Below are positions 2,956 through 23,925 of a stretch of DNA of 64,000 nucleotides, piece by piece. Numbering within the stretch: the first letter of the stretch is position 1; each line of letters begins with the position of its first letter. The notes beneath the pieces are model-generated. The model was not told the DNA's origin. It did not search any database and saw only the letters and a list, made by a program, of their open reading frames with translations. The DNA is taken from IMG/VR virus record IMGVR_UViG_3300044712_000810, positions 62,001 through 126,000 of that record, one strand, 5' to 3'. The translations under genes were made by a program, and so were the position numbers.

Positions 2956-2971
2956 TTTCCGCCCCATTTTT
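2945..2971 (+). terminator. Rho-independent terminator
   Basis: GGGGCGGA-TAATT-TCCGCCCC followed by ATTTTT. Confidence 0.75.
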
Positions 2972-3503
2972 AGCCAATTACGGTAATATTTAATAACTTA
3001 CTTTTATTACTTATACTAATATCTATATATACAGTATACTCTGTATATGCACCCATAGAAATTGGTGTAATATCAACGCTATTTAAAACAACGTTAACAC
3101 CAAGATCCGCACTTATTACTAATAAAATCATTTGAATTTCAGCTTCAATCAACTGTTTTGATGATTCCGTATCTTTCGAATGCAAGTATTTCTTTAATAA
3201 TGTACCAATTGACGCATCGAAAGGATAATCACCTACCATTGTTTGGAAAAAATTCTTAATATACGTAATAACAGTTTCATCAACAGTCTTTAAAGCACGG
3301 AAATCACCATATTCAGAAATTTGTGGAACAATATCAAATACTAAATCGTAATTGATTTGTTTCAGTTTTTCAATATAATCCCGAATCAAATATTGGATCG
3401 GTGATGGAAGTTCATCTAACTCATACAAATTCCGATACGATTTGATAGATCTCGGGATTTGATCTAATATTTCTTTCGGTAGTTTCGAGATATCTACTTC
3501 CAT
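2970..3503 (-). CDS. Baseplate wedge subunit, gp25/GPW family
   Basis: MVGDYPFDASIGTLLKKYL matches the gp25 GExPFxPxFGxxLxxxL motif. Confidence 0.75.
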   Translation of the reverse strand: MEVDISKLPKEILDQIPRSIKSYRNLYELDELPSPIQYLIRDYIEKLKQINYDLVFDIVPQISEYGDFRALKTVDETVITYIKNFFQTMVGDYPFDASIGTLLKKYLHSKDTESSKQLIEAEIQMILLVISADLGVNVVLNSVDITPISMGAYTEYTVYIDISISNKSKLLNITVIG

Positions 3504-3504
3504 T

Positions 3505-3741
3505 TTATCCCGCCTTTTGACCTACCCGCCTTTTCTTCTCCATTTCCTTCTTTTCTTTGACCTTTGCATTATATTGCTTTAATACAACATCATTATAAAG
3601 TGGATAAGGAATATCTGCAATATTTACGAGATCAGCAGGATTGGTTTTATCAAATAAATTATGATCAGATAAAAACAATTCAGTAAAATACTTATAGGCT
3701 TTCGACGCCCTCTCCGGTATTAAAAATGCTTCTGCGAAAAA
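3505..3741 (-). CDS. Start-less 78-codon frame; probable frameshift extension of the upstream gene
   Basis: +1 frame opens just after a TAG at the TTT TTT C site. Encodes FAEAFLIPERASKAYKYFTELFLSDHNLFDKTNPADLVNIADIPYPLYNDVVLKQYNAKVKEKKEMEKKRRVGQKAG*, ending 2 nt before the gp25 ATG. Confidence 0.55.
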   Translation of the reverse strand, partial: FFAEAFLIPERASKAYKYFTELFLSDHNLFDKTNPADLVNIADIPYPLYNDVVLKQYNAKVKEKKEMEKKRRVGQKAG

Positions 3742-4600
3742 ATTCTAATTCAATATTCACCTCTCTGTCAAATTTGTGTTGACAAATTGGACATTCGATG
3801 GATGCATAAAACCGAGGATCATATTTTTTGAATCTTTCGGTGTACTTATTAAAATAAGTTTCAGAAACAGTTTTTGGAATGTATGAATCAAAAGCAATAG
3901 CAATTTCTTGCATACTTTCAGTTCTTACAAATTGATCACTACCTTTTGGTTTTAATACGATAGCACGAGTAAGAAGAGTCATTTGTTCATGAAGAGCAAA
4001 TAATGATCCACCCTGCTCCAGATTCTTTTGTAGCATATCGGTACTAAGCATTGATAGTACACGGTTATTATCTTTGATTGTTGGAATTCTAGTATCAAAT
4101 GAATATACATATTTATCATAATCAATATCAATCTGGAATGAATACTTTGTAAAGGGAACGGTTTCACCATTCTCATCAACTTCATCCCACATTGTAAGAG
4201 TATCATCATGAAGTAAATCTTCAGCTATGATTTCTTTTTCAAATTCTTGACGACATTCAGGATTTTCACAAATAATTTTGCGTTTTCCAAGTGTTTCATA
4301 TGTATTTCTATAGATGCCCCAAATTAAACAGATTTTATCGATGTTTGAAACTTCACTAATAAATCTATCAAAATTTGGTTTTTCATCTTTATCTTCATTA
4401 TTAAAGACCATATGCTTATGAAGCAATTTAATCATTTCTCTATCATAACCATGAGGATTAGTAATAGATGTTCTAAGTGCAAGATCGTCACCAACAACTA
4501 ATGGTGTAACCGTAGCTGCTTTACGAGCAATCGGTAATGGTACTTGCAGTTTTTTAATTTCCATAATATTTTTAGCTGTTTCTAAAAACTGTGAAAGCAT
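3692..4600 (-). CDS. Baseplate hub assembly protein / tail assembly chaperone (T4 gp26/gp51-like)
   Basis: VTPLVVGDDLAL, DKICLIWGIYRNTY, Cys pairs CENPEC and CPIC, and a C-terminal ELEFF motif. Confidence 0.65.
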   Translation of the reverse strand: MLSQFLETAKNIMEIKKLQVPLPIARKAATVTPLVVGDDLALRTSITNPHGYDREMIKLLHKHMVFNNEDKDEKPNFDRFISEVSNIDKICLIWGIYRNTYETLGKRKIICENPECRQEFEKEIIAEDLLHDDTLTMWDEVDENGETVPFTKYSFQIDIDYDKYVYSFDTRIPTIKDNNRVLSMLSTDMLQKNLEQGGSLFALHEQMTLLTRAIVLKPKGSDQFVRTESMQEIAIAFDSYIPKTVSETYFNKYTERFKKYDPRFYASIECPICQHKFDREVNIELEFFRRSIFNTGEGVESL

Positions 4601-4613
4601 TGTCCCTCCAAAC

Positions 4614-4959: not shown

Positions 4960-6510
4960 TTAGCCGATGTAGTTTTCCATACCGTCGACTTTAATGAGTC
5001 CAAGACCTTCGGTACGAGCAACTTCGATCATTGTACGGGAACGAACGAAGTGTCTCATGTTACCATCGGTGATTTCTTGTACGATGTACAGTGGTTGATA
5101 GATAAGATCGATAATTGTGGCTTTCTCAAGAGCATTTTGTGGTGCTTTTGTTGAAAGATACATTTTACCATCATCAACTGCTGGACATTCAAGAACACGC
5201 ATTTGAGCGAATTGTGCGTTAGCACCAGACCAACCGATTTGACCCTTGTTATCAGGCATATTAACCATCATATCCTGAAGTGACTTCAGAAGAGCGGCTG
5301 TACGAAGACCTGTAACAATGTATTGTGGGTACATACGGAAGTTACGGTAAATGATACCGTTAAGAGTAGCAATACGTGGGATAATTGTACGAATGATATC
5401 AAGAACGTTAGCTGGAGCAAAATCACCAGTTCCGCCGCCACGATTGTAGTTACGGAGATCTACGTTTTGAATAGCATTGTTATTAGCCATATCGCCTTCA
5501 GCGGCTTCAAGGAAGTACTTAAGGTCGAAGTCTTTGTTTAAAAGAACCTGACGTTTAATAGCTTCTGAAAGTGTACGAGCAAGGTCAATCTTAAAGATTG
5601 ATTTGTAGTCTTGAATATCTTCTTGTGTAAGTTCAATTAAGAAGTCTTCGTTTGGATCGATTGTTACGTCGGTCATTTCAGTTGTAATCTTAACTTTTGT
5701 ACGACCCTTCATTGATGTTACTGGAGTAAAGCGACATTGGAATGTCATGCTTGAAAGAGTAACAGTGTTGGTTGTACCAGTTGTATCAAGAATTACAGAG
5801 TAAACAACTTCGCCTGAATCCCAGTTTACGTTACCATGCAGTGAACCTGTGACTACGCCACCGTCTGTTGCTTGATAAGTAAATGTGCCTTTAAGACCTG
5901 CACGGTTGTCAGGACGGATTGTTACTGGAATAACTTTAGCAGCACCATTGTCAACAAGGTTTGCCTTGTTAACCATGAAGTAACGACGATTCATTTTGAA
6001 CTTAGCAGCATCAGCACCAAGAGCTGCTGTAAGCAGATTCTCTGGGTTGTTTGGTGCTACGTTGTGCTCGAAGAAGTCAGCACGAACAAGGCTACGAGCT
6101 GTAGGAATAATTTGCTCAGAAACTGTTCCGTCGTAGTTTGTTGTTTTGGCTTTAATACGAACACGTGGGATAGATACAACAGGTGAATCTGTTGGGTATA
6201 CGTTGCAAAGTTCTGAGATGATTGGTTCAGCATAAATGTCTACGAGAATTGGGAAGCTAAGAACGGTCCAACCAAAGCCGAAGCTAGATGCTGGTACGTT
6301 TGCGGCTTCTGTAAGAAGATATTCACGTTGACGATCGGCAATAGCCATAACAACGGCACGACGACCTGCATCAAGACCCTCTGTTAAAGAATCCATGTAT
6401 GCGCGATACATACCGTTGTCAGTGATCATTTTAAGAGCACCGGTAGGACTATTGATGTCATCTGCATGTTCGCGGATAAATAATTCATAGTTTTCGAACA
6501 AAGTCTTCAT
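4960..6510 (-). CDS. Major capsid protein (T4 gp23-like)
   Basis: IISELCNVYPTDSP, DLARTLSEAIKRQVL, YQPLYIVQEIT...RSRT match gp23 blocks; LTE-A site at residue 68; highly biased codons; follows protease and portal genes. Confidence 0.85.
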   Translation of the reverse strand: MKTLFENYELFIREHADDINSPTGALKMITDNGMYRAYMDSLTEGLDAGRRAVVMAIADRQREYLLTEAANVPASSFGFGWTVLSFPILVDIYAEPIISELCNVYPTDSPVVSIPRVRIKAKTTNYDGTVSEQIIPTARSLVRADFFEHNVAPNNPENLLTAALGADAAKFKMNRRYFMVNKANLVDNGAAKVIPVTIRPDNRAGLKGTFTYQATDGGVVTGSLHGNVNWDSGEVVYSVILDTTGTTNTVTLSSMTFQCRFTPVTSMKGRTKVKITTEMTDVTIDPNEDFLIELTQEDIQDYKSIFKIDLARTLSEAIKRQVLLNKDFDLKYFLEAAEGDMANNNAIQNVDLRNYNRGGGTGDFAPANVLDIIRTIIPRIATLNGIIYRNFRMYPQYIVTGLRTAALLKSLQDMMVNMPDNKGQIGWSGANAQFAQMRVLECPAVDDGKMYLSTKAPQNALEKATIIDLIYQPLYIVQEITDGNMRHFVRSRTMIEVARTEGLGLIKVDGMENYIG

Positions 6511-6546: not shown

Positions 6547-7314
6547 TTAAAATTTAAAGACTAATCTTCTACCGATGACTTCAAGGAACTGTTCATTGAT
6601 AATATCATCGATAAATTTAACAACACAAGAATCACCATCACAAATGCGAAGATGATCATTTTCAATAATTGACATTACATCGGCGTTTTCACAAATCAAA
6701 GTCTTTGGATTCTCAGGAATAAAATCCCCTGCACTTTCTGGAAGGAAAGTAACAACACGAGCATTTTGATGTGATGGATTTGTAACAATGTCATAAGTAA
6801 TAGGCATGATTGGTTCAGTTACAACCAATGTACCATCTTGAAGTGGTTCAACTCCACCTAATGCGCGTAATGAGAAACCAATATTAATCTTGTCTTTCGT
6901 AATAAGATTTGCAAGATCAGGTCCTTTAAATCCAGAAAGAGTTTCGATTTCACCAATAATTTGGCCATTTTTCAACTCTAATTTTCTTAAAACAGCGGCG
7001 CAATTATTTAACTCAACAATTGCAGCTCTTTTCTTAAGAGTATCTGGATCTGAAGAAACAAACATTGGATGGTCTATCTCAAGAAGACATGATCTATTGT
7101 TAACTCTTGGAGCAAGTCTATTAACAATAGATTCACAAATTGCTTGTGAATAACGACGCTTATTAGCATTAAGAACATCTTGCTCTTGAAGAAGAGCTGA
7201 GAATGCTAATTTTGGTTTGCCACCAACTGTAGTTTCTTCAATAATCTTAATCTGATCGTATGGCACTACCGATGTCTGTTCAAAAATCAGATTGTACTTT
7301 CCGTTTGCTGGCAT
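6547..7314 (-). CDS. Prohead core protease (T4 gp21-like)
   Basis: NANKRRYS, LLEIDHP, IGFSLRALG, ITYDIVTNPSHQNA motifs. Confidence 0.9.
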   Translation of the reverse strand: MPANGKYNLIFEQTSVVPYDQIKIIEETTVGGKPKLAFSALLQEQDVLNANKRRYSQAICESIVNRLAPRVNNRSCLLEIDHPMFVSSDPDTLKKRAAIVELNNCAAVLRKLELKNGQIIGEIETLSGFKGPDLANLITKDKINIGFSLRALGGVEPLQDGTLVVTEPIMPITYDIVTNPSHQNARVVTFLPESAGDFIPENPKTLICENADVMSIIENDHLRICDGDSCVVKFIDDIINEQFLEVIGRRLVFKF

Positions 7315-7648
7315 TTTGTTGCGCCCTCTCTATTTCTGCATTTAATGTATTTATAAGATTATTACTTAACGATACAAGTGTCTCATATGAAAGAACATCG
7401 ATAAATTTAAGGACTGTTTCCAGTGCCTCATTTCTCATATTATATTGTTTCATTTTGACATTAAAATCACTCAATTTCTGAGCTAAATAATATTTCTTTA
7501 ATGATGTATATTCAACAGGTTCTTCTGGTTGAACTTCTTGTTGCATATCTTGCTGATCTATTGGTTGCCCATTTTGATCAAGCTGTGGAGGTTGTTGGAC
7601 CTGTTGAACTTGTTGTGGATATAACGGAACTTGTTCAACTAGGAACAT
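7280..7648 (-). CDS. Hypothetical Gln/Pro-rich protein (possible prohead core component)
   Basis: Likely start ATG at 7648 after GGAGGA; lies between portal and protease. Confidence 0.6.
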   Translation of the reverse strand: MFLVEQVPLYPQQVQQVQQPPQLDQNGQPIDQQDMQQEVQPEEPVEYTSLKKYYLAQKLSDFNVKMKQYNMRNEALETVLKFIDVLSYETLVSLSNNLINTLNAEIERAQQNASKRKVQSDF

Positions 7649-7649
7649 G

Positions 7650-9737
7650 TTATCCTCCCATATCTCCACCAAGCTGACCAGTTGCAGCAAGTGCATCTGC
7701 TTGAGCTTTTTGTTGTGCTTTCATCATAATTTCATTTTTAACTGCAAGTTCAGTAGAGTATTCCTTAGACTTCTGAATAAACTTATCCCAATCAACGTGA
7801 GGAACGTATGATTTAAGGAAGAAGTAAGGATCAACTTGCATTTGCATTCCTGTGAATACGCCTGCAATGTTACCGACAGAACTCATTGTCATTTCAATTA
7901 ATTGAAGAATCAGAACAACAGGTGGAATTAACGTAAACTTAGCATAGTCAGATGGTTTAAAACCAATTTCTAACATTTCAGCAACAGTGTCTATAACTTC
8001 ATTAAAACCTTTAGTAACTGTTTCTTGAATATCTGTAATCTCCGTCGAGAATGAAACGTTAGCATGGACTAATTGCTCACGTAATTCAACAGTATCCATG
8101 TATCCGAGATATGGTGCAGGAATACCAGATAAAGATATAATTTCACGTCTAGCATCTTCTAAGTCAGCAACTTTAATTGATGCATCGCCCATTGGTTGTA
8201 TTTCTACATCAACTGGACGTTTACCATCTTTTACAATAGCAAACATGTCTTTAAAGTCTGAAAGAATCTTAGGGATTGCTTTAAATGAAGCTAAATCTTC
8301 AAGTGTCACACGAGTATTATACAATTCACGTTTAAGTTGTTGTATATATTTTGTATGCATCTGTGTAGATCCTACGTCAATTGACCATTTACGGATAACA
8401 CTTGCGCGAGATAATTTAGTAATTGTATTTGCAAGCTGTGCTAATGTATATAACTTCGACGGAAACACTAATGGATCAACGACTGATTCGCCATATGGAG
8501 CAAATTCTGCAGAAGCCATTGAAAATGGAACCATGCGGTTAGATGGAATAAAGCGCACTTTCAATTGTTGATATTGCGCTTTGCGGTTCATTCCCTGTTC
8601 AATAAGCATACGCTTAATGAATCGGTATGTATCTTCACCTAATGATTTCAATGCAGCTTCTGGATTTTGCATTTTAGATTTCTTACTGCTTATAGCTTTC
8701 TTTAGAACGTAGTAGATCAGTCTGTTGACGACTTTTTCTTGTGTCAAACCTTGCGGGTTTGCCATGTTTGTAATTCGTCCAATAATAAGTGATAAGTTTT
8801 GTGTCATGTTTGTTGTATTGAATTCTTGTTGTTTTTGAATCTCAAGATATCCAATACGCGATCCATATTCTGTCTCAAGAACTAATATGTTATGAGGTTT
8901 ATGAATTTTTAAAAGGACATTATCAAAAGGATTATCTGTTTGTTCATCTTTCGATGGACCAGAATCCTCTTCAACTATTAAACAGTTTGCACATTCCTGT
9001 AATAAACTATCAATCTCGTAAATATTAGATCTGGCAAAATTTAGATTATTTGTTCTTGTCTCTAAATCTTTTACTCTAGCTTCAGTAATAATACTTCCGC
9101 GTAAAGCCGGTTCTAACATTTCACGAATTTCACCATTATACTTTAATGGTGGTGTATCTTGTTCATTGAGAACGTTAAGTGCTGCAAGCGTTTTTGACGC
9201 TTCGAACTTTTTAGATTCTGCTTCAACATCAACCGTTTCAATAAATACATCACCATATAATAGTTGCGAATGCAATACGATGTTTTTTAATTTCTCAATC
9301 AAATTAAAGTTTTTAATAACATCGTCAATGAATTGTTTTGCTTTTTCAATCTTCTCTTTATCTTCTTCTGTATCCTTTACAACCTTTGAATCTTCAACAT
9401 CCTTAATCATGTAACATTTTCCAGTTACCGGATTCTTTTGTAGAATGTTTGGTTTATAAACCTTGAAAATACGTTTGATCATTGGAACAGCACGATAAAG
9501 TTCTTCATAAGTCGCATATCGCATCAGTCTATCACGAGGAATTGTAGCTTCTTCTAGTATTTTATTAATTTCATCATCTTTTGTGTTTTCAGTGAACAAA
9601 TTAAGAAACTTTCCAGTCTCTTCTTCACTTTCAGTTTTACTATTTATACTAGGGATTGTTTGTAAAATCTTATCTATGTTTTGTTCTAAGTCTGATAGGT
9701 TTTTATCCGCAAAGACCGAACCACCAAATAATGGCAT
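7650..9737 (-). CDS. Portal protein (T4 gp20-like)
   Basis: PYGESVVDPL...TKLSRASVIRKWSIDVGS matches gp20 YRxxRAPERRIFYIDVG; RREIISLSGIPAPYL. Confidence 0.85.
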   Translation of the reverse strand: MPLFGGSVFADKNLSDLEQNIDKILQTIPSINSKTESEEETGKFLNLFTENTKDDEINKILEEATIPRDRLMRYATYEELYRAVPMIKRIFKVYKPNILQKNPVTGKCYMIKDVEDSKVVKDTEEDKEKIEKAKQFIDDVIKNFNLIEKLKNIVLHSQLLYGDVFIETVDVEAESKKFEASKTLAALNVLNEQDTPPLKYNGEIREMLEPALRGSIITEARVKDLETRTNNLNFARSNIYEIDSLLQECANCLIVEEDSGPSKDEQTDNPFDNVLLKIHKPHNILVLETEYGSRIGYLEIQKQQEFNTTNMTQNLSLIIGRITNMANPQGLTQEKVVNRLIYYVLKKAISSKKSKMQNPEAALKSLGEDTYRFIKRMLIEQGMNRKAQYQQLKVRFIPSNRMVPFSMASAEFAPYGESVVDPLVFPSKLYTLAQLANTITKLSRASVIRKWSIDVGSTQMHTKYIQQLKRELYNTRVTLEDLASFKAIPKILSDFKDMFAIVKDGKRPVDVEIQPMGDASIKVADLEDARREIISLSGIPAPYLGYMDTVELREQLVHANVSFSTEITDIQETVTKGFNEVIDTVAEMLEIGFKPSDYAKFTLIPPVVLILQLIEMTMSSVGNIAGVFTGMQMQVDPYFFLKSYVPHVDWDKFIQKSKEYSTELAVKNEIMMKAQQKAQADALAATGQLGGDMGG

Positions 9738-15973: not shown

Positions 15974-18900
15974 TTATACTAAACTGTGTATTGCATAATT
16001 AGTAGAATCATTTCTAAAACTATTTGAATTTGCTGAGAATAATTTATCAACAATATCTGTAATACTACCAGCGCCACTGTCTTTAATTGATTGTTGTTTA
16101 CTACTTCCAGTCTTATTCGCCGCAGCACCAGCTGCAACAACTTGTGTCATTGAAGACATCATGCCTTGCATACCAGAAGCCATCGACGACATTAACTGTC
16201 CAAGATTACCCATTTGTATTTTATTATTTGAAGTGTCAGCAATAATTGTATTTGGATCGAATCTAACTCTTGCATTCATTGATGACTGTGGATCAACTGG
16301 AATATTTCGCATATTTGTATTAATATCACTAATCATAGCATTGCGATATACTGCTGCGCGTTGTGCTGCTTCTTGTGCTTTTTGTAATACTTCAGATTTT
16401 AGATTGGCAAATGCATCACCAACTTTTTCTGGAGAATCTGACATATTATCAGCCATTTCTTGTTGTGCTGTAGTTGGTGTATTTTGTGCGACTGCACTTG
16501 AAGCGTTCATTGGTTTTAAATATTGTGCATATGCTGTACCTGGTTTTGTTCCTGATTCTCCCGCAGATTGGAACTGCTTTATACCTGCGAAATCAATACC
16601 AACAGGTTGAATATGCCACGGTTCATGTTTCATTGGTCTATATAAGCCATACTTTGCAAATAATCCGGCTTTATCCATTGCATCAGCAGCTTTAGGATCA
16701 ATATCCATTGCTAAACCAAAACCATGCATTGATGTACCAGGTGTGGCCGCGAGATTTGGTTTTTCTTGTTTTAATCTTTGTTGGACAGCTAAACTTCTCC
16801 ACCCATCTGTTACTTTAACTTGTTGACCAAATTCCTGTTGTGCTGCATTAAATCTTGCTAAGAAATCAGGGTTAACACCACCAAGGGCAGAACCACCAAT
16901 ACCAGCAACGTTTGCAGTATTACCAGATAAATTATTCATTGCGGCTGATGCTAATTGAGATCCACCTGCCATCTTATCACTTGCCCAACTAACTAATTGA
17001 TCTGCATTTTTACCAGCAAATATCTCTTTATTTGAACCAGCAGCTTTTGGTAAAATATCTGCTGCCAATTGACCAGTACCTTGTGCGGCGAGCATTTTCT
17101 TAGCACCTTCAGCACCAAGAAAGTGTGCGAGATATAATTTACCAGGATCCATCGATCCTATGGCTTTTGAGTTATCAAGCGTAAGTGCAGCAGCCATATA
17201 TGCTTGAGCACGAGGATCAAGAATATCTCCATCTTTTACATTATATTTAGATCCATATTTTTGTACTACACCTTTCCATGTTTCTTCTGTAAACTGGAAT
17301 AAACCTGTAGCAGAAGATGTTTTTGCTTTCGCTTTTGGATCTAAACCGCTTTCTTTTGTCGCAACAGATAATAAGTATTCAAATGGAACACCAGTTTCAT
17401 CACTAGCTTGTTTAATTGCAAGTAAAACATCTTGTGGTGCACTTGAAGCTCTACCAACATCTGTTTCATTTTGCTTAGTTTGTCTTTGTTGCATCTTATT
17501 TGCATTTGCTAAAGTGTCACTAGCAAATGCTGTATTCATATATCCAGCTTTATCGAATGTATTTGCTGCAATATTTTGTCTAGCAGTTTGCACTCGTTGT
17601 GCACGATCAGATTTAATTTGATCTTTGTATCCAGCCGTATCAAATTTATCACCAGCAGATTTGATTTCACTCTTTTCAGATCCGCCAACCATCCATTTCA
17701 AACTATCTGGAATTTGATCAAGTATCCAATTTCTTAATCTTGCACCCATATTACTAAAATCGAAACTCATAAAGAGATCAACTATACTACCAATTAATCC
17801 ACCAGCCAATGGAGATAAAAATGGTATTCCATTTTTTGCACCTGCATTAGAAAGTTTCAATGCATATTCTCCATCGAATAAATCAACAATAGGATCTTGC
17901 CATTCTTCAGTTTTAGCTTTAATTATCGTTGCCCAATTTGGCAAATCTGTAAATAACCATGCAATTCCATCAATGAGACTACCAATAGTTCCACCAACAA
18001 GAGGACCAAGGACTGGAATGGCATTAAAACCATGCGCCATCTTTGTTCCCCATTCACCAGGGAATATATCTACTATATTTTTAAGTGACCATGTTTTTAA
18101 TTGGTCATATGTGTCTTCAATTTTGTTTGCGCCAAAATAACCAATTAAACCACCAATAGCACCACCAACTAATAAACCGGCGATGTTACCGATGCCTGGT
18201 ACAACAGATCCTATTGCCCAACCCATTAATGCATATTTACCAAAACCTTTTAATCCAGACATTAATCCACCTTCATCGTTTCCGAGAAAGAATTTCTTTA
18301 ATGCTCCAGATATACCATCTTCTTTATATCCTGATATTAAATCATATATACCAGCAACAGCTCCACCAATAAGAATTCCACCAATACCAGCCATAAGACC
18401 AGCAGATCCTGCTGCAGATCCAAACATGGCACCAAGAGTAGGACCAAGGGCAGATGATAATGCTCCACCAATCTTAGATGTAATACCAGAAAATAATTCA
18501 CCAATTTTACCAATACCAGAAAATAAGAAATCAAGTATACCACCATCTTTACCAGTGCCAATTTTTGGTGTACGTTTTAAAATTTCTGCAATATTTTTAG
18601 ATATAGTTGGTAATTCTTTAGTATTTGCATCAATATCTTGTTGTGTTTTTTCTTGTTCTTTTTCTTTTTGACTTTGGCGAGTTTCACTTAATTCTTTAAT
18701 TGTTGAATGGACCTTATCATTTGGAACTACAGTTCCAGGTGTTTTTGGTACTATTACTTCCGGACCTTTTTCACCTACAAGATATGCTCGATCTGTTTTA
18801 ACAGGACCACCCTTTGCTGCTGCTTGTCCTGATCTATTTCTAAAAATATCATAAACATTATTAATACCTGTAACAACTTCTTGTACTCCAGAAGCTGTTA

Positions 18901-21403
18901 ATTCTGTAGATTCGGCAACCGTTGGATTTCTAGACTGCGGATTTGGTCCACGTTCAAGATTTTGTTTTGTCTCTTTTATCCAATATGCGACACTTTGAGT
19001 GTCAGCATATAATGCATCTAAAATTTGTTCTAATAATTGAATATCAGGACCACCAGAAATACCACTTGTTTGTATACGATGAAAATCAGTATTCTCATCG
19101 TATAATGATCCTCTTGGTGTATTATTAATCATACTAAAATTACCAAGTTGATCTTCTAAATTGCTAGACACATTATTTCTATATTTATCTAAAACTTTTT
19201 GTTTTTTCTTACCAGCAAATCCTTGAAGTAAATCACCAGCCTGTCCACCAAGTTCTGAACCTTTAATAATACCAGATGCCGCTAATAATGCAGCAATTAT
19301 ACCACCAACGGGTCCACCTAATGCTAGTCCAGCGCCAACTAATGCACCGCCACCAACACCACCAGTAAGACCACCAAATAATTGCCCGTATTCTTTAATA
19401 TTAACAGATTTAGACAATTTACCAAACATGGATTTATCATATTGCGATTCAATAAATTTTGATTTAATATCATCTAATTCTTGTTGTTTTTCATCTGTAT
19501 TTTTGAATCCACCACTTTCAAAATCCCATGCTCGATCATCTTTATAAAATTGGCGTCTATCAACTTTACCAGTACCAGCCAATTTCGATATATCTTCTTG
19601 AATCGCTTCTAAGAATTCTAATTGATGTTCTAATAATTCATTTGATTTCTTAACATAATTAGGCCATTCATTACCGGCAAACATATAGAATTTTTCTTGA
19701 TCGTTGCGTTCATACTGTTTCTTAAACTTATCAAATTCTTCAGTATCAGTATGACCCATTCCAAAACCAAGAAAATTCTTAACACCGTGATATGCGCCTT
19801 TTACTTTTCTTCCAGCACCTGTAATAGCATCACCTAAGTGAACTAATGCAGCAAGTCCTGGAACTTGAAGTGCCATATCATGAAAAAACCCACCAGGTGT
19901 TTTTGGTTTACTTTTTGATATCCATAAATTAGATGCTGCGCCAGAATGTACTCTTGCGTTTGTTGATTCTTTTGCTGTAATTTGTGTTGTACCAAAAATA
20001 CCTTGTAAATACATTATTACTTTTTCTTCCCATGATTGGCCGATTCGCCCAAGATCTGATGGCTTCATTGTAAGTAATCTGTATTCACCAAGAGTTAATC
20101 CAAGTAATGCTGAGTTTGTTTCTTCATCTTTCGAGAATGATTTAGAACCACCATATGCAAGTTTTAAATCATCCAACATGCCTTTAGGTGTTTGGCCAGT
20201 AGCAATAAAATTGAATAATTGACCAAATATATCATATTTTGCTAATGTTTTAGAAATACCATATTCAAATTTATCAAGACCACGTGAAAAGATTCCTTGT
20301 TGTCCAGGACCATCTAATCTTTTATCAAGAGTTGATGTTGATCCTTCGACTTGTTTTTCTTTCTCTTCGCGTACATATTCCATTTCAGAATAAATTGCAG
20401 GAAGAACACTAAGATAATCAATTTGAATCTTCATCATCTGTAATTTTAAATATTCTACAGAATTAAGACCCGGTTGACGTTGTGCAGCCATTTGTGATAT
20501 ATATGTAGTTAAGTTTCTTCCAGGTGAATGTTCATCAATAATTTTGTCAGATGATTTTCTTTGTGCTGTAATCTTTGAAAGTCTTGCAGATTTTGCCATT
20601 GATAAAGCTATCTGTGTTCCAATCAATGCTACCATCGGTCCAATAGTACCGGCACCAGCAATGGCAGATCCAACACCTTTCATACCCATCATGTTTGCTG
20701 CACCTGCAGCACCAGTAGCCATGCCTTTGTACATCATCATAGATGGGTTTACTGCGGAAAAAGCAGAACCAAGTGGAGCACCAGCCATCATACTTGCTGC
20801 GATTGGTAAACCATGAGTTATTTTACTTACTCTCATAGTATTATCAATAACGCGTGAAGCTTTTCCAACTCCACCTAAATGTTCTGAATATTGTCTCTCT
20901 TTAGCCATGCGTTTCATTTGGTTTACGTTACGAATACCGCGCATAGAACCATAAAGAGCACCAATACCAGGTGTAATAAAATCCATTGCATCAAGACCAG
21001 GTTTAGATGCAGCTTTAGCTGAAGAAAGTGCTGTGTCTAATTGTGCTTTAATTTGATCATTTGCAACATCTTTTGCAGCATCTTTAGTTCCTGGCTTTGT
21101 AATAGATCCACCAATAAATTTACGAACACTGGCAACATGTTTAGCAGCAGTATCTGGAGATAATCCAATTCCACGAAGAGCTTTGGCTAAACCAACATCG
21201 CTGATTTGTCCGCGAATATACATACTAGTTAAAGTTTCAGCAGTAACTAAAGGTAAATTTTGTGAAGCTTTATATGTATTAGAATTTTTAAACTGTTGAT
21301 GTTGATATGCAAAATAATCATTTGGTCCGCCACCTGATACTGACGGATTGCGCATTGCTTCTTGCGCTCTCATTTGTGCTTCTAAAAGTTTTGGATTCAT
21401 CAT
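15974..21403 (-). CDS. Tape measure protein with lytic transglycosylase and M15 (VanY-like) peptidase domains
   Basis: 1809 aa, Gly/Ala-rich; GGPV..AYLVGEKGPEVIVP motif; SLT motif ATKESGLDP..SSATGLFQF; M15 motif TDGWRS..PGTSMHGFGLAMDI..EPWH. Confidence 0.85.
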   Translation of the reverse strand: MMNPKLLEAQMRAQEAMRNPSVSGGGPNDYFAYQHQQFKNSNTYKASQNLPLVTAETLTSMYIRGQISDVGLAKALRGIGLSPDTAAKHVASVRKFIGGSITKPGTKDAAKDVANDQIKAQLDTALSSAKAASKPGLDAMDFITPGIGALYGSMRGIRNVNQMKRMAKERQYSEHLGGVGKASRVIDNTMRVSKITHGLPIAASMMAGAPLGSAFSAVNPSMMMYKGMATGAAGAANMMGMKGVGSAIAGAGTIGPMVALIGTQIALSMAKSARLSKITAQRKSSDKIIDEHSPGRNLTTYISQMAAQRQPGLNSVEYLKLQMMKIQIDYLSVLPAIYSEMEYVREEKEKQVEGSTSTLDKRLDGPGQQGIFSRGLDKFEYGISKTLAKYDIFGQLFNFIATGQTPKGMLDDLKLAYGGSKSFSKDEETNSALLGLTLGEYRLLTMKPSDLGRIGQSWEEKVIMYLQGIFGTTQITAKESTNARVHSGAASNLWISKSKPKTPGGFFHDMALQVPGLAALVHLGDAITGAGRKVKGAYHGVKNFLGFGMGHTDTEEFDKFKKQYERNDQEKFYMFAGNEWPNYVKKSNELLEHQLEFLEAIQEDISKLAGTGKVDRRQFYKDDRAWDFESGGFKNTDEKQQELDDIKSKFIESQYDKSMFGKLSKSVNIKEYGQLFGGLTGGVGGGALVGAGLALGGPVGGIIAALLAASGIIKGSELGGQAGDLLQGFAGKKKQKVLDKYRNNVSSNLEDQLGNFSMINNTPRGSLYDENTDFHRIQTSGISGGPDIQLLEQILDALYADTQSVAYWIKETKQNLERGPNPQSRNPTVAESTELTASGVQEVVTGINNVYDIFRNRSGQAAAKGGPVKTDRAYLVGEKGPEVIVPKTPGTVVPNDKVHSTIKELSETRQSQKEKEQEKTQQDIDANTKELPTISKNIAEILKRTPKIGTGKDGGILDFLFSGIGKIGELFSGITSKIGGALSSALGPTLGAMFGSAAGSAGLMAGIGGILIGGAVAGIYDLISGYKEDGISGALKKFFLGNDEGGLMSGLKGFGKYALMGWAIGSVVPGIGNIAGLLVGGAIGGLIGYFGANKIEDTYDQLKTWSLKNIVDIFPGEWGTKMAHGFNAIPVLGPLVGGTIGSLIDGIAWLFTDLPNWATIIKAKTEEWQDPIVDLFDGEYALKLSNAGAKNGIPFLSPLAGGLIGSIVDLFMSFDFSNMGARLRNWILDQIPDSLKWMVGGSEKSEIKSAGDKFDTAGYKDQIKSDRAQRVQTARQNIAANTFDKAGYMNTAFASDTLANANKMQQRQTKQNETDVGRASSAPQDVLLAIKQASDETGVPFEYLLSVATKESGLDPKAKAKTSSATGLFQFTEETWKGVVQKYGSKYNVKDGDILDPRAQAYMAAALTLDNSKAIGSMDPGKLYLAHFLGAEGAKKMLAAQGTGQLAADILPKAAGSNKEIFAGKNADQLVSWASDKMAGGSQLASAAMNNLSGNTANVAGIGGSALGGVNPDFLARFNAAQQEFGQQVKVTDGWRSLAVQQRLKQEKPNLAATPGTSMHGFGLAMDIDPKAADAMDKAGLFAKYGLYRPMKHEPWHIQPVGIDFAGIKQFQSAGESGTKPGTAYAQYLKPMNASSAVAQNTPTTAQQEMADNMSDSPEKVGDAFANLKSEVLQKAQEAAQRAAVYRNAMISDINTNMRNIPVDPQSSMNARVRFDPNTIIADTSNNKIQMGNLGQLMSSMASGMQGMMSSMTQVVAAGAAANKTGSSKQQSIKDSGAGSITDIVDKLFSANSNSFRNDSTNYAIHSLV

Positions 21404-22047: not shown

Positions 22048-23925
22048 TTATCCACCAAAGAAAGGCATAAATGGTAAAACATCTGGATCATTACCATAAT
22101 TATTTTCACCAATATCATACATATCACGTTCGCCAGTTGTTATAAATAGATCTGGATTAAGCGATGCATTGCGAGGATTATATGTTCCTTTCTTAGGATC
22201 TGAAAGACCTATAAGCTCACGCATATTGGTTGAAAAGTTATTTGTAATTTCCCTATTTGATAAATTAAGCATTGGCATAATTTCCAAAGCTTTTCTTTTT
22301 CTTGTATATGCACAGAAACAGGCAGCCATAAATAAGTCACTAAAACTATTTGATCTGATTGTTCCTGCAGATGAACGTTCAATTGATGACATTTGGTTTA
22401 TTAATTCTTGCGATTTAATACACTTTGGATTTCCATCAATCGCTTCTTTTAAACAACCAATCATCATATCTTTTGAAATACCAGTAGTCATAATACCTGG
22501 TTCTTTATCATTATCTGAATACATAAATGGAGAATAATCAAATTCTCTAACATGATATAATAAGTGTTCAATTGGTGCAAGACCAATAGTGTTCTTTTCA
22601 ATTGCTAATATAATTCTTGGACCGACTTGACGATATAACCATTGAAATACTTCATGGATAATATCACCATATTTAGCAAAACTTCCAAGGCGAACTCCGA
22701 TTTCAGCAATCTGATTAAAGTCTTTAAAGCTAAATATTTGAATAGCGTTAAATGCACCTTTAATCGATCTAGCTGTATCTACACCAATTAAATAATAATC
22801 TAATGGATCAATATATTCAGAAAATACTTTCATTGTTGATCCATATTTAAATGGAACATTCTGAACTGAATTAACAGCTTCAAGTTTTGATAATTGATCG
22901 TCGTCGAAAATACAGTTAGATGTACCAACGAATATTAAGTCAAGTTCTTGGTTAATCTTACGTTGGTCTGAAAGTTCCTGACATTGTTCTTTATACCATT
23001 TTTCAGTTTTACGAGGATCTTCACTCCAATGATATTGAACTTTAATAAAACTGTTCTTACTTTCATCATGTGCAATTTCATCAATATCAACATCGGATCT
23101 CCAATCTTCATGTAAAGGATCATCTGGATCAGCAATAAACATATCTTCGGAATCTACAGCTTTTGACCAACGATCATAAAACCATTCACCGTTACCCGCG
23201 ATACCGTTTGGAGTACTTGTAACAAATTGAAAATATGGATAATTGTTTGATATTGCTTGGTCTTTAGCAGTTGCTAATGTTTGTTGTGCAGAACCGAAAA
23301 TTTCTCTCATGTGAGGTATGAATGCTGCTTCGTCGATATATAAACATGAACTTGTAAGTGAACGAGCAATAGTTGATGGGTGTGCGGTTGATGAAGGATA
23401 GAAAGAGTCAAGACGTGAACCATTACGAAGTTCAAGATATGTTAATCTTTCACTCTTTGTATTTTGTACACAAGTCCATCTTAACCAATCTGGCAAATTA
23501 TTAATAACAAACTTAACCATTGCTAAGTTTTTAATGGCAGGACCTTTTCTAAAGTTAAGAATAAGAGGTTTATTATATGGAAAGAAAATAGTGGACCATG
23601 CAAGAATACACGCAGCAATAGTGGACTTACCTAACTGACGTGAAGCCATGAATACACATTTATGATATCTATTTAATACGCGCACTACGCGTCTTAATTT
23701 CGGTCTTAACATTTCTTCTGAATATTGACGCATACCACCAGTTTCTTCTATATATACATAGTTTTGAATAAAATAAAGTGGATTACGTCTGCATTGAAGC
23801 CACTCAAGGGCATAATGATCATTAATTTTTATATTAGTATCTTTTGATAACATATCCAAACATTTTAAATCTGTTGTTGATAAATCATCATCTTCAATAC
23901 TTAAATCTATACTTTCACGAAGCAT
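22048..23925 (-). CDS. Terminase large subunit (T4 gp17-like)
   Basis: ASRQLGKST, LYIDEAAF, TSTPNG, nuclease IGVDTA and DLFMA motifs. Confidence 0.92.
   Translation of the reverse strand: MLRESIDLSIEDDDLSTTDLKCLDMLSKDTNIKINDHYALEWLQCRRNPLYFIQNYVYIEETGGMRQYSEEMLRPKLRRVVRVLNRYHKCVFMASRQLGKSTIAACILAWSTIFFPYNKPLILNFRKGPAIKNLAMVKFVINNLPDWLRWTCVQNTKSERLTYLELRNGSRLDSFYPSSTAHPSTIARSLTSSCLYIDEAAFIPHMREIFGSAQQTLATAKDQAISNNYPYFQFVTSTPNGIAGNGEWFYDRWSKAVDSEDMFIADPDDPLHEDWRSDVDIDEIAHDESKNSFIKVQYHWSEDPRKTEKWYKEQCQELSDQRKINQELDLIFVGTSNCIFDDDQLSKLEAVNSVQNVPFKYGSTMKVFSEYIDPLDYYLIGVDTARSIKGAFNAIQIFSFKDFNQIAEIGVRLGSFAKYGDIIHEVFQWLYRQVGPRIILAIEKNTIGLAPIEHLLYHVREFDYSPFMYSDNDKEPGIMTTGISKDMMIGCLKEAIDGNPKCIKSQELINQMSSIERSSAGTIRSNSFSDLFMAACFCAYTRKRKALEIMPMLNLSNREITNNFSTNMRELIGLSDPKKGTYNPRNASLNPDLFITTGERDMYDIGENNYGNDPDVLPFMPFFGG

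Follow-up and report, generated by a model that had tools for sequence, protein, structure and literature searches.

Does the small frame that opens at the 3' end of a predicted phage baseplate gene extend that gene's product, so that one gene gives two proteins? The gene, here called gene X (P0001), lies on the minus strand of the window, which is the whole 64,000-nucleotide (nt) stretch of DNA analysed and corresponds to bases 62001-126000 of the 314,837-bp IMG/VR record IMGVR_UViG_3300044712_000810. The genome has direct terminal repeats, a GC content of 33% and 32 tRNAs. A first-pass annotation, made from the window alone, had proposed that ribosomes slip into the +1 frame at a TTT TTT C sequence near the end of gene X and continue through an open reading frame (ORF) that has no start of its own. 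From comparison of the locus with its relatives, we consider it likely (probability of about 0.85) that a +1 translational frameshift yields a fusion protein here. The features concerned, with the frame of gene X taken as frame 0, are as follows.

4604..4609, minus strand: GGAGGG Shine-Dalgarno sequence, 3 nt (4603-4601) before the gene X ATG at 4600-4598, from direct reading of the sequence.
3692..4600, minus strand: gene X (P0001), 0-frame coding sequence for 302 amino acids (aa), a gp26-like baseplate hub/hub-assembly protein with two CxxC pairs; stop codon TAA at 3694-3692.
3745..3747, minus strand: TAG closing the +1 frame, two codons upstream of the putative UUC re-pairing codon; the 5' limit for a shift.
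3734..3742, minus strand: putative shift site UUU UUU CGC, read as GAA 3745-3743, TTT 3742-3740, TTT 3739-3737, CGC 3736-3734, then AGA.
3692..3736, minus strand: dual-coding overlap, with a 0-frame tail of 14 sense codons (RRSIFNTGEGVESL) plus the stop and a +1 reading of AEAFLIPERASKAY.
3505..3735, minus strand: +1-frame extension of 76 codons plus TAA at 3507-3505, modelled as a three-helix domain with a basic C-terminal tail.
2970..3503, minus strand: downstream gene of 177 aa, possibly a gp25-like baseplate wedge protein, whose ATG lies 1 nt past the stop of the +1 ORF.

Most of the layout first described was borne out on the minus strand. E-F-F-R is encoded 17 codons before the 0-frame TAA (3694-3692), and the +1 frame is closed by the upstream TAG (3747-3745), after which it reads AAT TTT TTC GCA... 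and stays open until TAA 3507-3505, 76 codons after the slip. The distance from the +1 stop to the ATG of the gp25-like gene, given as 2 nt, needed correction: a single nt (3504) separates them, the ATG beginning at 3503. By our own estimate, the chance of a 76-codon open frame at 33% GC is p ~0.003. A contig piece of 109 nt from an unrelated wastewater run spans 3725-3833 of the window without a gap.

The relatives of this locus come from environmental sequence; samples that contain such phages include anaerobic-digester, wastewater, sediment and rhizosphere material. Searches of 50,697 cultured-phage records (megablast, tblastn) gave no match to the region, gene X or the +1 peptide, and Pfam and PHROG scans returned no significant match for gene X or the +1 peptide. 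Metagenomes yielded 118 homologues of gene X of ~300 aa with 36-60% identity to P0001, all with a nearly invariant E-F-F-R-R close to the C-terminal end. We examined 7 viral and 75 metagenomic loci, 67 of which include the C-terminal region; 50 of these are non-identical and form the basis of the locus counts given below. The tree of gene X comprises 46 sequences, which fall into 17 clusters at 70% identity, and has a length of 15.3 substitutions per site.

A +1 ORF of 69-97 codons begins at the same place in 50/50 loci. Conservation of the encoded peptide sets in with the first codon past the site (xEAYLVEGRAxKxYKYFVDTFLLYQTLFENxGDxxSILxLPYPLYNDIILKQIEEKKREKK, followed by a basic tail). Past the 0-frame stop, the synonymous fraction was 0.65 in the +1 frame versus 0.05 and 0.21 in the other two frames; the body of gene X scored 0.66 in its own frame, and the background for a non-coding frame is ~0.2. 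Codon-position entropy was also consistent with coding in the +1 frame. Within the 14-codon overlap, the synonymous fraction of single-nucleotide differences was 0.74 for the +1 frame, 0.53 for frame 0 and 0.14 for frame +2. Both frames of the overlap are coding, and purifying selection there is stronger on the +1 frame than on frame 0. The value of 0.74 therefore argues that the +1 frame is translated already upstream of the 0-frame stop, which is the key point separating frameshifting from reinitiation.

Two proteins carry the same combination without a frame change. When 1.84 billion representative proteins were searched with a profile built from the extension, 94 matched; nearly all of these are short ORF calls (42-106 aa), and two are long. 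The extension domain occupies residues 269-338 of P0143 (340 aa; E = 8e-14) and residues 262-322 of P0188 (333 aa; E = 4e-7). By hhalign, the two proteins are full-length homologues of gene X (probability 99.5% and 97.8%, respectively), and both are uninterrupted ORFs on their own contigs. In distant relatives, then, gene X and the extension occur together as one ordinary protein.

An improbable alternative is that no fusion is made and that the +1 ORF is a small gene in its own right, with ribosomes either initiating at a non-canonical start or reinitiating once they have terminated at the gene X stop. Gene callers in public data report short ORFs of 42-106 aa at the locus, the gene X stop falls inside the +1 ORF so that coupling is conceivable, and a TTG stands at +1 codon 4 in many of the loci and at codon 19 in the window. 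However, the codon-4 TTG is missing from the window and from loci L007, L008 and L067, and no ATG, GTG or TTG in the +1 ORF is conserved among the loci, almost no candidate being preceded by a Shine-Dalgarno sequence. The earlier statement that the ORF has no proper start of its own was correct, the only canonical start codons in the window's copy being the TTG at codon 19 and an ATG at codon 64, both without a Shine-Dalgarno sequence. Conservation in the +1 frame instead begins at the slip site, and the selection described above already acts upstream of the 0-frame stop. This stop moves between 7 and 18 codons from F288 depending on the locus, while the +1 sequence stays in register, and P0143 and P0188 hold gene X and the domain as a single ORF.

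The frameshift is further supported by the conservation of the site itself. The second Phe codon is TTT and is followed by C in 50/50 loci; the next codon is CTG in a single locus and CGN in the other 49, never AGR. The first Phe codon is TTC in seven loci and TTG (Leu) in one. On the tree, the F288 codon is TTT in 46/46 sequences with 0 changes, the F287 codon shows 6 changes, the R289 codon at least 11 (all among CGT, CGC, CGG and CGA, plus one CTG) and the R290 codon at least 13 (CGA to AGA or the reverse). Within the gene bodies of the family, Arg codons are AGA in 59%, CGN in 33% and CGC in 3% of cases. The +1-frame residue directly past the site varies (A, V, G, E or C), and the invariant C is therefore unexplained by the protein needs of either frame. 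This conservation of UUU_C at the nucleotide level exceeds what the encoded amino acids need, and the invariant C would reflect a requirement for tRNA-Phe (anticodon GAA) to re-pair from UUU to UUC. The flanking context in the family is GAR UUY UUU CGN MGA AGC. The first-pass annotation had asked whether homologues always have TTTTTTC at the Phe codons together with a conserved +1 frame: UUU_C and the +1 ORF are present in 50/50 loci, and the T run differs in 8/50. Because the first Phe codon varies in these eight, the T6 run is not the conserved element, and the slippery element would be UUU_C(GN) rather than the T run.

Intervening sequences lie at or beside the shift site in four relatives (L042, L045, L046 and L048), and Rfam identified group I introns in L046 (107 bits) and L048 (99 bits). 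Splicing would restore GAG TT/T TTT CGC in L045 and L048. In L046 (Ga0114934_10020395; L046:1761-2330), the intron stands just before the EFF codons of the gene X homologue and is followed by a tandem pair of candidate 3' exons. In the first copy, GAA TTT TTT AGA AGG ... TAA encodes a short tail, EFFRRSLFGN*; this copy is the sole family member with AGA in place of CGN. The second reads GAA TTC TTT GCT GAG GCC .., encoding EFF/AEAFLVEGRA.. and the whole extension in one frame, with the C absent. A G precedes each copy, and the start of each can pair with the GAATTC guide region of the intron, as judged by eye. The second copy is the predicted FF/AEA junction encoded in DNA, and the arrangement suggests that alternative 3' splice sites may replace the frameshift in this phage. 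A pattern scan of viral contigs found no in-frame junction variants lacking the C.

The insertions near the site were placed at about 3330-4460 in L045, at 3348-3581 and about 3670-5100 in L048, and at about 1870-1926 in L042, a second insertion following CGCMGA in L048 and L042. At least one intron-like insertion carries a long ORF, possibly for a homing endonuclease. From these positions, the shift site appears to be a hotspot for intron homing.

A different translational shift, either -2 on the T run or +1 elsewhere in the 17-codon stretch between the +1 TAG and the 0-frame TAA, is quite unlikely. The T6 of the window would permit -2 re-pairing from UUU to UUU, and the slip codon is not fixable from sequence alone. 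However, -2 re-pairing fails in the eight loci with TTC (7) or TTG (1) as the first codon, yet UUU_C is invariant, and the varying first codon argues against both a -2 shift and transcriptional slippage. No further shift-prone element is conserved in the overlap, and L046 encodes precisely FF/AEA. Of the two shifts first proposed, the +1 slip from UUU to UUC is the one that stands, with the invariant UUU_C, the start-less +1 ORF, the selection in the overlap and the fused homologues in its favour; the -2 variant has TTC or TTG in 8/50 loci against it.

Slippage of RNA polymerase on the T/A run, giving mRNAs minus one base or plus two, is a known route to frameshifted products, and the window does have six consecutive T. 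We regard it as very improbable here: six bases are short for productive slippage, the run is broken (TTC TTT or TTG TTT) in 8/50 loci with the same arrangement, and the strict C after UUU would be left unexplained. We infer that it is the ribosome, not RNA polymerase, that shifts. Homopolymers are prone to errors, but an indel introduced in sequencing or assembly, or the decay of a gene whose true form was a fused ORF or two unrelated pieces, has almost no chance of accounting for the same frame arrangement in 50 different assemblies from many samples, some at loci without a homopolymer, with purifying selection on both frames.

Amber recoding was considered and rejected. The genome has a CUA-anticodon tRNA (labelled Pyl by ARAGORN) at G000:C1:290747-290821, outside the window, in a tRNA cluster at C1:275644-305720. 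Reading TAG as sense gives no meaningful lengthening of ORFs, and TAG is a normal stop genome-wide despite this amber-suppressor-like tRNA; the standard code was kept.

Under the proposed +1 frameshift, most ribosomes would stop 14 codons past Phe288 and release the 302-aa product. A fraction would shift with the P-site tRNA-Phe (anticodon GAA) on UUU 3739-3737 and the A site awaiting the Arg CGN codon (CGC 3736-3734). The tRNA would re-pair with the overlapping UUC 3738-3736, the C would be skipped, and decoding would continue in the +1 frame for 76 codons. The phage's own tRNA set includes tRNA-Phe(GAA) and tRNA-Arg(ACG). The predicted product is a 364-aa isoform composed of gene X residues 1-288 and the 76-aa extension, with the junction ..LEFF/AEAFLIPER.. 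and the junction peptide ..LEFFAEAFLIPER. The extension was modelled as three helices, the C-terminal one long and basic, with a predicted local distance difference test score (pLDDT) of 85, and the model had no significant match in BFVD. The two isoforms would have in common an N-terminal domain resembling tail assembly chaperones (TACs) and a Zn-binding body, and would differ only at the C-terminus.

Several observations weigh against this account. The EFF motif is also found in T4 gp26, which has no extension, and because of this the conservation of EFFRR as amino acids is not in itself evidence of frameshifting. Long ORFs of the same genome contain 32 other in-frame TTT_CGN dicodons; because of these, the core motif on its own probably shifts only weakly, and the efficiency here would be low, at a level common among G/GT-type systems, save for any contribution from the flanking context. 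The divergent loci L005 and L006 (34% identity) lack UUU_C, though their +1 ORF is kept, and the UUU_C site is not universal for that reason. No conserved RNA structure was found 3' of the site (RNAalifold, 47 sequences; single-fold mean z-score 0.1), a result on which a downstream stimulatory RNA was dropped as a candidate, and there is no Shine-Dalgarno-like stimulator upstream. P0143 and P0188 are each known from a single contig in a single sample. A separate candidate, a Shine-Dalgarno-like GGAGRG ~24 nt downstream of the site, was rejected: it is explained by dual coding (VEGRA / GGREG), does not occur in several of the loci and is not followed by a start codon.

What does gene X encode? 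The first-pass annotation had called it gp26/51-like, and the structural comparisons agree with the gp26 part. The AlphaFold (AF2) model of gene X (pLDDT 90) had no Foldseek match in the PDB, and a profile search gave no relevant match among PDB sequences. In BFVD, Foldseek returned 63 viral models at E<=1e-3 with TM-scores by query of 0.45-0.72, many of them named baseplate hub subunit, baseplate hub assembly protein T4-like or hub assembly chaperone, and the fold is shared by AFDB clusters that bear the names baseplate protein or baseplate hub subunit. PF12322 (T4_baseplate) did not match P0001 at E<=0.1; it gave weak matches in 2/32 family members (best E 0.0015) and a weak precomputed match in the fused homologue P0188. 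Gene X and T4 gp26 have in common a C-terminal CPxCG-x11-EFF motif, in which hhalign pairs CPICQHKFDREVNIELEFF of gene X with CPECGKTHAHVIRGLKEFF of T4 gp26, a marginal similarity (probability 38% over 23 residues). These results support the assignment of gene X as a gp26-type baseplate hub/hub-assembly protein, and gp26 is listed as a hub assembly chaperone by Leiman et al. (PMC3004832).

The T4 protein also bears on the origin of the slip-site codons. Read directly from the DNA, its C-terminus is ..CPECGKTHAHVIRGLKEFFELL*, and gene 25 begins at its stop; in T4 gene 26 (L084:1803-2429), which ends ..LKEFFELL*, EFF stands three codons before a stop that overlaps the gene 25 ATG. Because T4 gp26 ends with the same EFF motif, the FF codons used as the slip site in the jumbo-phage clade would be an ancestral protein feature of the gp26 family.

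A structure search independent of Foldseek, against 48,161 PDB chains, pointed to the N-terminal domain. The top three matches, confined to residues 1-105 of gene X, were YqbN (3KLU, Z 6.4), HK97 (2OB9, Z 6.2) and Rbstp2171 (3FGX, Z 5.8), followed by PLE ORF19 (Z 5.2), the next unrelated row scoring 3.7. Structures 3KLU, 2OB9 and 3FGX are phage tail assembly chaperones (PMC9603447). The N-terminal domain is probably related to the TAC fold; we grade this as probable only. The Z-scores are modest, the range of 5.8-6.4 falling under the caution level of 8 set for the search tool, and they count against the relationship, as does the lack of a Pfam TAC match to gene X.

The first-pass annotation had gone on to suggest that the gp26-like family is a chaperone of the lambda G/GT type. 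The likeness lies in the logic: as with lambda gpG/gpGT, there would be two proteins in a fixed ratio, one of them equipped with a further module for binding in tail or hub assembly; the product is assigned to tail or baseplate assembly; and the shift is near the 3' end, 14 codons before the stop, adding a domain of 76 aa. Of the G/GT pair, the G part binds the tape measure and the T part the tube protein, and virions contain neither. In contrast to lambda, where the usual shift is -1, the gene X shift is +1, and there is no X_XXY_YYZ heptamer. Gene X encodes 302 aa with extra Zn-binding domains, whereas G has about 100-150 aa, and, unlike G/GT, gene X does not lie between the tail tube and tape-measure genes, a further point on the opposing side. 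The three TAC chains at the top of the search, at modest Z, make the suggestion plausible, but the gene is not in the canonical position. Because gene X is larger than G and lies outside the canonical position, we do not claim G/GT membership; what the comparison offers is an analogy in logic, which the structures support in part. A role of the pair as an assembly chaperone like G/GT, with the extension contributing to that role, is a tentative proposal to which we give somewhat less than an even chance.

Comparison with T4 gp26/gp26' gives both likenesses and differences. The fold is related to that of gene X, and T4 gene 26 lies directly upstream of wedge gene 25 as gene X lies upstream of a possible gp25-like gene. 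T4 gene 26 also has two products, the second being the annotated internal-start 26'. However, T4 gp26 has 208 aa, reads TTC TTT GAG at EFF, stops three codons later and has no +1 ORF, and its second product is shortened N-terminally, whereas that of gene X would be extended C-terminally.

The proposed site belongs to a class with known members. UUU_Ynn is prone to +1 shifts in bacteria, with Yersinia YopN-TyeA as an example, and the +1 shift of influenza A PA-X at UCC_UUU_CGU is noted in the same source (PMC5009743) and was shown by mass spectrometry (PMC3498833). The PA-X site has the same core as that of gene X, and movement of tRNA-Phe from UUU to UUC with an Arg CGN codon in the A site has been proposed for it. 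The UUU_CGN / UUU_Ynn class needs no downstream structure, as would be the case at the gene X site. The two differ in that gene X belongs to a double-stranded DNA phage with a bacterial host and has UUY (or UUG) as the preceding codon, where PA-X has UCC. Among tailed viruses, +1 frameshifts are known in Listeria phages PSA, A118 and A500 (CCC_UGA, ACA_CCC) and in the tail chaperone of myovirus HSTV-2 (PMC5009743). There, as proposed here, +1 recoding gives C-terminally extended structural or assembly proteins; the differences are a Pro CCC slip codon, stop-codon or pseudoknot stimulators and unrelated protein families.

The two divergent loci without UUU_C (L005:3900-4200 and L006; IMGVR_UViG_3300028584_000450 and 3300028549_001062) have an overlap that reads AAC CTT TTC AGG AGG TTC CTT CAA CGG GAC TGA, with a tandem AGG. 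The +1 site of prfB (RF2) is AGGGGG-UAU-CUU_UGA. Only in L005/L006 is there a likeness to it, AGG AGG UUC CUU CAA providing a Shine-Dalgarno-like hexamer and, after a spacer of 3 nt, CUU with a pyrimidine next to it. Unlike prfB, L005/L006 have no stop codon in the A site, and the likeness rests on one sequence pair; the window's own site, also unlike prfB, has no Shine-Dalgarno-like element upstream.

Few recoding events of tailed phages are as conserved as programmed frameshifting in tail-assembly-chaperone genes, the G-T frameshift being conserved among long-tailed phages 'except T4' (PMC5009743). We found no paper in the literature describing a frameshift in gp26-type genes. The present finding would tie the gp26 hub-chaperone family to the TAC fold and make it a candidate for the missing G/GT of T4-type phages, with a large environmental phage clade keeping a two-isoform system by a +1 slip. 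It would also add a well-supported case of the UUU_CGN +1 motif from a bacterial virus, one in which natural controls (the fused relatives and the intron variant) define the junction. More speculative still, and in our judgement rather doubtful, is the full proposal that gp26-family hub proteins are the T4-type homologues of G/GT, that a widespread uncultivated jumbo-phage clade keeps the two-isoform system via a UUU_CGN +1 slip, and that this slip has been replaced at least twice by other means, namely the fusion in P0143/P0188 and possibly the alternative 3' splice sites of the group I intron in L046. Gene callers split the locus into a 302-aa gene and either a spurious short ORF or nothing, and a joined coding-sequence annotation is due for the whole family.

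The synteny of gene X with the downstream 177-aa gene is conserved in relatives. The 177-aa protein gave weak matches to the baseplate-wedge PHROGs phrog_261 and phrog_975 (E 0.003-0.005), and its BLASTP similarity to T4 gp25 was not significant. In many relatives, the +1 ORF ends ..AGA AGG TAA, a purine-rich sequence 1-15 nt before the downstream gp25-like ATG that resembles its Shine-Dalgarno sequence (compare window 3505-3520). This arrangement suggests that translation of the long isoform may be coupled to that of the next gene.

Gene X is flanked on one side by the gp25-like gene and on the other by a capsid module that includes a major-head-like gene (4960-6510) and a protease gene (6547-7314). 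Hidden Markov model searches of this phage assigned no tube, sheath or canonical TAC. A 138-aa ORF at 7280-7696 overlaps both the prohead-protease-like gene (6547-7314) and a 695-aa virion/portal-like gene (7650-9737) by 35-47 nt. Further along, 15974-21403 encodes an 1809-aa protein with transglycosylase/endolysin-like and tape-measure-like segments, which is probably the tape measure or a tail lysin of the phage. A terminase gene (22048-23925) stands between the 1809-aa gene and the remaining tail genes.

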